A program made the translations under genes and the position numbers. The notes under the pieces were generated by a model. The model ran no database searches, was not told where the DNA came from, and saw only the letters and a list, made by a program, of their open reading frames with translations. Shown one piece after another: positions 43,613-46,066 of a stretch of 64,000 nt of DNA. Position 1 is the stretch's first letter, and every line of letters begins with the position of its first letter. Source of the stretch: Bugula neritina (taxonomy: Eukaryota; Animalia; Bryozoa); contig OZ037768.1 in the NCBI GenBank assembly GCA_964035545.1, positions 20,071,700 to 20,135,699 of the forward strand. The letters are read 5' to 3'.

Positions 43613-46066
43613 ATGGTTGCCTCCGGGAGTAAAAGTCAGGCTAAAAAGCCTACTAAAAAGGACAGTAAAGGTTAGTAACCAACAATTTTTTCAGTAATTT
43701 GTGCCAAAAATTTGCATTTTATGTTTACAGTCAATATTGTATTGGAATTCCTCTTAAATAAAATAATAACGTTAAATAACTATCAAACTGTCCACTACAC
43801 CGACACCGAAATTGAGAAAAACTCCACCGTCACCGTGCAATCCAAAACTTACAGTTACATTAACATTGCGATAGTGCTAGTCTTTATAATTAATTTTCTA
43901 CTTTCTTGGTAGATATATCTATACTTTTTGAGTTTGATTAGTACAGTGGTATTTATTTCTACTCCTAGTCTGAGATTTGTGCTTGATATTGCGCGTAATA
44001 TTAATATAATTATAAATATTAAATAATGATTTTTCAAGTTGAAGTTAAACTTAACATAAATATTTAAATTGATAATAAATAATAATTCATATTTCGTAGT
44101 GATCTTGATACTGATAGTTAGACTTTAAGTGATAATTGATTTATTCAATTTCATAAATTGTGTTTCAATTTTATTGGTACTTCAATTTTTCAAATTTTTA
44201 AACATAAAATCTAAGCTGAAGCTTAAGATTCACTTTCAGATCACTAATTCAAATCTCATCTTGACTTTTCAAGCATGCAATCAAATAAAACTAATCTCTT
44301 TGTTACTTTACCCTTTTGTTTCTTTATGCTTTCACGGCACGATATTTTCATTATATATTTGTGTTTTTATGTATTTGATTTTATGCAATAAGTATTTAAT
44401 AACTTTAATTTAATCTTGTTCTGTTGGTTTTTTTATCTGTTTTGGGCCGTAGTGAGTACCTTTTTACCTAATTATTCTATTCTACATGTAAAATATAAAT
44501 TCATTCATATGCAAGAAGTTAACTCAATTTTGCTTAATAGCTGTTACTGAAGAGTAATGGAGGCTAATAATAAACTAAGGCTACCCTACTACTACTCATA
44601 CCATCATTAGTCTTGCCCTACTATGTTGCAGATGCCAGCGGTAAGGCTAAAAACCCCACAGATAAAGCCTTAAAAGCTAAGAAAGCTGTAGCTAAAGGCA
44701 CATTTATCAATCGCAAAAAGAAAGCAAGATACTCTGTGCATTTCCGAAGACCCAAGACACTAAGTTTGCCTCGTGCCCCAAAGTATCCCAGACAGAGTGC
44801 CCCAGGCAGACCCAAGTATGGTTATATTAATAAGTTGCAATGCTAGCAGTTTTCATAAATACTTCTACCTGGCAAAGGATGCATGTTCTTTCATCCACTA
44901 TCTAAAAGTGCTTCAATTAAATCTTATTTCCAACTATGTAGTTTCTAAAGTAAATTGGGGTAAAAATCACAGTAAGCTAATTTGCTCCTACACCATTGTC
45001 TCCTGATATATTTATGTACTAGTATGTATACCATTGTCCTAAGTTATTCGCTCATTTTTTCTAGGCTAGATCAGTTTAAGATTGTCAAGTATCCACTGAC
45101 TACTGAGTCAGCTATGAAAAAAATAGAAGACAACAACACACTAGTCTTCATTGTCGATAAAAGATCCAACAAAAATATGATCAAGGCTGCAGTACACAAA
45201 CTCTACAGCATTGAAGTGCAAAGAGTCAATACTCTGATCAGGTTAGTTTCTTCACATGCTAATAGATAACCTGCAGTTGCCCTGTGATTACAACTACTTG
45301 GTGATGGGGAGGCAAGGAAAGTGGTGGACAACACTTTGCTGTATATAGTTGAACAGAGGTTTGTTGAATCTTCTGTTCTCCACCAGAGCGGTTGTCCGCC
45401 ACTGGAATTGTTTGGTATCCCTTGTGATATTCAGATTATGAGAGCTGAGGGCTTTTTCTGCTCCCAGTAGAGTATGTTGTCAACTTTATGTAAGTGGCTG
45501 TTTAGTTATGCTGGATGATTGTAGACCTGATGGAGAGAAGAAGGCCTATGTCAGACTAGCATCTGATTATGACGCTCTCGATGTAGCCAACAAGGTAAGG
45601 TATTTAGCTATCTCTAAGAGATTGAAATTGAAACAATCATACATTGCATATAGCAAAGTGCCTGTATAGACCAGACTAGTTGGTGTCCACATGGGCGTGT
45701 AGTAGTGCTTGTAAACTAGCAGATTGGCTCTCTCTGCGCTGTGTTTATAGTTTCTTGATTACTTATCATATTAATTGTGTTCATTTGATAAAAAGAAGCA
45801 TTCTGCAGTGCAATACTAAAACACTTAATTGTTGGAAATAACAAAACTGAATGTAGACTAAATATCAGCTTAGCACTCTTAGATATGCTCGAGTTGACGC
45901 AAAAATATTCTCCAAGCTTGAACAAAATAGAGTTCTGTCATAGGTTTATTTCAGTTTTTCCCAGGAGCAAATTTTTACTAGCTCCTTTAGGAAAATACAC
46001 TCATAAACTGTGCTGGTGAAAGTCTGAATTGTAATATTTATTTTCTTTCAGATTGGAATCATCTAA
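43613..46066 (+). CDS. RPL23A: 60S ribosomal protein L23a (uL23), about 167 aa
   Basis: Exons 43613-43670, 44632-44815 ([22 protein letters not shown]), 45065-45241 ([22 protein letters not shown]), 45525-45594 ([23 protein letters not shown]), 46052-46066 (IGII*). Confidence 0.97.
45279..45452 (+). ncRNA. Intronic box C/D guide RNA, SNORD97/SCARNA97(SNORD133)-like, predicted guide for 2'-O-methylation of elongator tRNA-Met C34
   Basis: Terminal stem GCCC/GGGC, C box GTGATTA 45284-45290, D box CTGA 45445-45448. The 14-nt guide TTCAGATTATGAGA (45430-45443) is complementary to TCTCATAATCTGAA of tRNA-eMet. Long internal stem-loop. The 3' end lies 72 nt upstream of the acceptor. Confidence 0.88.

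Follow-up and report, generated by a model that had tools for sequence, protein, structure and literature searches.

An intron of the ribosomal protein gene RPL23A, within the 64,000-nucleotide stretch of Bugula neritina DNA analysed here (the window), is very likely to encode a box C/D guide RNA (45279-45452, plus strand) that is the single-copy invertebrate counterpart of the vertebrate SNORD97/SCARNA97. Judged from its sequence, the RNA corresponds to the functional definition of SNORD97/SCARNA97 in its predicted guide, in its register and in having its target in the same genome. This extends the predicted RNA-guided wobble methylation of elongator tRNA-Met (tRNA-eMet) to one more animal lineage, and it provides a concrete target on which Cm34 can be tested outside vertebrates.

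By direct reading of the sequence and by parsing with a script, the anatomy of a box C/D guide RNA was found to be complete over approximately 174 nt (Table 1). The C and D boxes are flanked by a 4-bp terminal stem, with one nucleotide separating GCCC from the C box, and a conserved internal stem juxtaposes the D' box and a degenerate C' box. An earlier note on this DNA had placed the GCCC and GGGC strands, the C and D boxes, a D' box at 45301 and a C' box at 45424, and our parsing placed all of them identically. The only irregular element among the two main boxes is the U at position 6 of the C box. In the kink-turn, position 6 of the C box pairs with position 1 of the D box, and if this pairing holds here the U would face the C of CUGA, resulting in a U-C mismatch.

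Table 1. Features of the intronic guide RNA and of its host gene. Positions are those of the window.
Feature	Position	Strand	Remarks
RPL23A exon, L23eN domain	44632-44815	+	Pfam PF03939 Ribosomal_L23eN, E 4.6e-23
RPL23A exon directly 5' of host intron	45065-45241	+	Pfam PF00276 Ribosomal_L23, E 1.3e-13
Host intron of RPL23A, GT..AG, 283 nt	45242-45524	+	snoRNA in the sense strand
Terminal stem, 5' strand GCCC	45279-45282	+	pairs with GGGC 45449-45452; unchanged in all homologues
C box GUGAUUA	45284-45290	+	single departure from RUGAUGA: U, not G, at position 6
D' spacer, 10 nt	45291-45300	+	length kept, sequence not, across homologues
D' box GUGA	45301-45304	+	GUGA/UUGA in the four homologues, always equally far from the C box
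Internal domain, 119 nt, long hairpin	45305-45423	+	folding compared with shuffles
Closing stem of internal domain	45306-45310 with 45418-45422	+	
Core hairpin of internal domain	45320-45403	+	
C' box GUGAUAU, degenerate	45424-45430	+	homologues: GGAU or UGAU core only, at the same position
D guide, 14 nt	45430-45443	+	antisense to tRNA-eMet positions 31-44; G45440 opposite C34
Spacer G, single nucleotide	45444	+	between D guide and D box
D box CUGA	45445-45448	+	unchanged in all homologues
Terminal stem, 3' strand GGGC	45449-45452	+	unchanged in all homologues
RPL23A exon directly 3' of host intron	45525-45594	+	translation 91-96% identical to the same exon of related loci
Final RPL23A coding exon (IGII, then stop)	46052-46066	+	

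Fibrillarin methylates the nucleotide that faces the fifth position from box D, and the register of the D guide can be read against this rule. When the guide was compared with a tRNA-Met(CAT) gene of the same genome (L001), all 14 nucleotides formed Watson-Crick pairs with positions 31-44, and C34 lay opposite the fifth nucleotide upstream of box D. Both points had been claimed before, the guide as the exact reverse complement of the tRNA-eMet anticodon arm and a G at the fifth position as the partner of the wobble base, and both were confirmed. In the 216-Mb genome, eight copies of the 14-mer target were counted, compared with two matches of a control pattern. The genome has at least four elongator tRNA-Met(CAT) genes with the exact 14-nt target (L001, L003, L004 and L008), which account for four of the eight copies, answering the earlier note's question of whether the tRNA-eMet of this species carries it; the remaining matches were the guide itself on the opposite strand (one) and isolated sites without tRNA or snoRNA features (three). 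The target tRNA has an elongator-type T loop, and its sequence is almost the same as that given for the elongator tRNA-Met of Ciona in the PMC6601510 supplement.

Ribosomal RNA was rejected as a target for either the D guide or the D' spacer, the best runs being reached by about 75-90% of shuffles. Against the rDNA unit of the same genome (18S, internal spacers with 5.8S, and 28S), the best match of the D guide was equalled by 181 of 200 shuffles, and the complementarity of the D' spacer to rRNA or to tRNA-eMet was no better than that of shuffled guides. The D' spacer (45291-45300) is probably not a guide, with the D' side serving a structural role only. The rDNA array itself (G000:C6:7113109-7238843) has units approximately 13 kb apart in both orientations; the plus strand carries the first six of its 18S copies and the minus strand the following ones, indicating an inversion within the array.

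The guide together with CUGA amounts to 18 specified bases, for which 0.006 occurrences are expected per genome, and the shorter pattern of guide core, any nucleotide and CUGA was found exactly once. Allowing one mismatch gave 24 further matches (35 for the control), none of which was accompanied by a C box and a terminal stem. On these counts, the element is a single-copy gene and not a chance assembly. As far as the genome sequence goes, it is the only guide gene of this kind in the genome.

The host gene had previously been named as RPL23A, and the Pfam domains of the flanking exons bear this out. The exons, searched singly, encode eukaryotic uL23/RPL23A; the translation of the exon directly upstream of the intron matched 580 uL23 fragments of the protein collection at E <= 1e-8. 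Within the intron, the snoRNA starts 37 nt past the donor site and leaves 72 nt between its end and the 3' splice site, close to the approximately 70 nt that had been estimated, and the homologues, which also lie in the sense strand of introns, end 71-80 nt before theirs. A distance of 72 nt to the 3' splice site favours snoRNP assembly during splicing.

Homologues were sought by searching the protein collection with the translated upstream exon and comparing the contigs on which the most similar fragments are encoded; the boxes were then aligned by anchored parsing, as a MAFFT alignment misplaced the long insert of L012/L019. Counting the window, four independent homologues were obtained, these being the window RNA, the RNA of L012/L019 and two copies in L016-L018. 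The orthologous intron carries the RNA in two other lineages, L012/L019 (254 nt) and L016/L017 (179 nt), and the L016/L018 lineage has an extra copy of 173 nt in the intron preceding the L23eN exon. On contig L016, the two copies are at L016:195-367 and L016:1305-1483, in different RPL23A introns, and both C boxes are the canonical UGAUGA. These lineages have diverged deeply from that of the window, with which they share only 75-80% identity in host-exon DNA. The conservation of boxes and guide in relatives, for which the earlier note had asked, is therefore present in two other lineages.

All copies share a common plan, which runs from GCCC through the C box, a 10-nt spacer, KUGA (GUGA or UUGA), the closing stem and the hairpin to a degenerate C' box, the guide, a G, CUGA and GGGC. 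The C box of the L012/L019 homologue is the UGAUUA variant, as in the window. In the guide, the 12 nt at the 3' end are invariant among the homologues and variation is confined to the 5' edge (UUCAG, GUCAG, UUUAG and UAUAG). Both L016 guides have a U in place of the C of the other homologues, opposite tRNA position 42, so that this pair is a G-U wobble unless the tRNA co-varies. The boundary of conservation is sharp between L012 and L019. Upstream of the RNA, their introns share 61.5% identity and the alignment has 253 gap columns; exactly from GCCC onwards, the RNA aligns without a gap at 96.5% identity. The 79 nt from the snoRNA to the 3' splice site (L012:3973-4051) are also 96% identical to those of L019, and this spacer, which includes the branch site, is apparently under constraint too in L012/L019.

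A survey of the RPL23A intron in relatives, which the earlier note had suggested, gave a divided answer: the orthologous-intron copy was found in two lineages, but no guide RNA was present at the RPL23A loci surveyed in at least five further lineages (L009-L011, L013, L014 and L046-L050). RPL23A is therefore not a general host position but one shared by a subset of lineages. No guide RNA was seen in L015 and L020, whose contigs probably end too soon past the exon to judge.

The internal domain differs from what is known in vertebrates. The long, pyrimidine-rich and unstructured internal region described for human SNORD97 and SCARNA97 was not found in the window RNA, whose internal 119 nt are about 50% pyrimidine and form a hairpin instead. 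The minimum free energy of this domain is -48.8 kcal/mol (z -4.65), and none of 200 shuffles folded as well. The D'-C' region of the other homologues also forms one rod-like hairpin (z -2.07, -3.20 and -7.91), and the closing stem is of the type GGGGA/UCCCC, with one compensatory exchange of G-C to A-U and several G-U changes. In the lineage of the window, a rod-like hairpin of 100-200 nt therewith stands in place of the vertebrate pyrimidine-rich core, which is a new detail. The internal domain of L012 (L012:3745-3943) folds into an almost perfect rod hairpin of 199 nt (-83.7 kcal/mol, z -7.9), far longer than is required to juxtapose the D' and C' boxes. It is conceivable, if rather improbable, that the hairpin is a functional module of its own, such as a signal for localisation to the nucleolus or Cajal body or a small-RNA precursor, and not a mere spacer, and that its core was reinvented repeatedly in a family that would be pan-bilaterian and include CeN56 of nematodes.

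Searches with Rfam models gave little. At gathering thresholds, no match was found in the whole window. The covariance-model check against SNORD97 (RF01291) that the earlier note had proposed came out negative: neither the 451-nt stretch of the locus nor the genome gave a hit at E <= 10, and the gathering threshold of 45 bits was not reached. At E <= 10, the locus and two related loci yielded sub-threshold noise only, with the exception of ceN56 (RF01643) of C. elegans. This was the best Rfam resemblance (window 45278-45453, 14.7 bits, E 3.5) and lies far below the 60-bit threshold of the model. On the whole genome, neither RF01291 nor RF01643 gave a hit, with a few dozen of many candidates scored in the first look. 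The absence of a SNORD97 hit suggests that the Rfam model is too narrow, in our view reflecting vertebrate sequences with a pyrimidine-rich core.

The ceN56 consensus resembles the window RNA in its 5' end UGCCC, in UGAUUA, in CAA, in the guide core, in the spacer G and in the GGGC stem. It differs in having AUGA as the D box and a shorter core; both ends align well, the core poorly. With AUGA as the D box and UGAUUA as the C box, a U-A pair would be restored in ceN56 if position 6 of the C box pairs with position 1 of the D box. RF01643 is filed in Rfam as an unclassified sRNA without a clan. Depletion of C/D snoRNP proteins lowers the level of CeN56 (PMC2442092), and CeN56 is probably the nematode counterpart of SNORD97.

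In human cells, SNORD97, in intron 13 of EIF4G2, and SCARNA97, in intron 10 of LARP4, together direct Cm34 of tRNA-eMet, which guards the tRNA against stress-induced cleavage (PMC6601510); the same paper bears out the two host genes that the earlier note had named. Like the window RNA, human SNORD97 is an intronic box C/D RNA with a D guide directed at tRNA-eMet C34 and an unusually long D'-C' region (PMC6601510), but its host is EIF4G2 and not RPL23A, and its internal tract is unstructured and pyrimidine-rich and not a base-paired hairpin. Human SCARNA97 (SNORD133) shares the guide, the target and a long internal insert (93 nt in human). Its pyrimidine-rich insert, however, makes it specific to Cajal bodies, and in vertebrates it has a paralogue, SNORD97, whereas the genome of the window has a single gene. 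A later preprint extended the target network and the phenotypes of these guides (bioRxiv 10.1101/2023.06.22.546166). One common SNORD97/SCARNA97 candidate is described for insects, Ciona and flowering plants (Vitali and Kiss 2019, PMC6601510), and the window RNA fits these candidates as they are described there, with one gene per genome and an invariant D guide. In the Drosophila snoRNA map paper, nothing on tRNA-Met was found. Archaeal box C/D guides for Cm34 of tRNA-eMet use the same position and guide logic (cited in PMC6601510 and bioRxiv 10.1101/2023.06.22.546166), but they are either short sRNAs or portions of tRNA introns, not passengers of a spliceosomal intron.

Other explanations of the element have to be weighed against this background. 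The RNA could be assembled into a real box C/D RNP on tRNA-eMet and yet be mainly non-methylating, acting as a chaperone or stabiliser of pre-tRNA or on further tRNA targets. In human cells, D97/D133 make contact with several tRNAs, and tRNA levels fall when D97/D133 are lost (bioRxiv 10.1101/2023.06.22.546166); the imperfect C box could be read in the same way. The geometry is nevertheless exactly that of a methylation guide, with one spacer nucleotide and C34 at the fifth position, and is invariant in the homologues, leaving this reading unlikely. The U at position 6 of the C box would also suit a decaying or unexpressed snoRNA copy, in which the weakened box blocks RNP assembly. Such a copy would, however, be the sole one in the genome, its guide, boxes and stems are all intact, and the UGAUUA variant persists in both L012/L019 and the ceN56 consensus, so we consider decay very unlikely.

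A cis-regulatory structure for the splicing or autoregulation of RPL23A, in which the snoRNA-like boxes are incidental, would account for a long and stable hairpin and for the conservation of the 79 nt 3' of the RNA between L012 and L019. The sequence of the hairpin, however, varies across lineages, and it is the boxes and the tRNA antisense that are conserved; one lineage has a second copy in another intron, and many RPL23A genes lack the element altogether, making regulation in cis highly improbable. A chance combination of short motifs has nothing in its favour beyond the shortness of each box. The guide and D box alone are already expected far less than once per genome, the stem, the C box, the intronic sense orientation, the spacing and the cross-lineage conservation come in addition, and with the conservation data the chance reading is effectively refuted.

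An intron-encoded guide for Cm34 of tRNA-eMet would be expected to follow the known pathway of intronic C/D snoRNAs. The RNA would be transcribed within the RPL23A pre-mRNA, and Snu13/15.5K, Nop56, Nop58 and fibrillarin would assemble on the C/D kink-turn during splicing of the intron. The conserved stem would close the long, lineage-variable hairpin and so bring the D' and C' boxes together, and exonucleases would trim the debranched intron to the GCCC/GGGC stem. Our expectation that the RNA accumulates comes from its conservation. By analogy with human cells, the product would be Cm34 on tRNA-eMet, which could stabilise the anticodon loop against endonucleolytic cleavage and support the decoding of AUG. 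In human cells, splicing and expression of the host genes were unchanged when the element was deleted (PMC6601510).

The earlier note had concluded that RNA-guided wobble methylation of a tRNA exists in this invertebrate lineage, with the guide in a different host gene. The anatomy, the target, the intron position and the conservation fit that conclusion, but it is less new than it appeared, candidates in insects, Ciona and plants having already been reported (PMC6601510). The principle is known and the mechanism is not new; the RPL23A host, the hairpin core and the connection with CeN56 add modestly to what was known. Among lineages, the guide moves freely from host gene to host gene but keeps its sequence, its register and its distance from the splice site.

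Two further features were seen in the window. ARAGORN identified a tRNA-Phe with the unusual anticodon AAA at 63542-63612 on the plus strand, possibly a pseudogene or else a repeat derived from a tRNA. On the minus strand, at 20436-21842, two adjacent open frames each encode half of a Forkhead domain, and this region looks like a fox gene interrupted by an intron.
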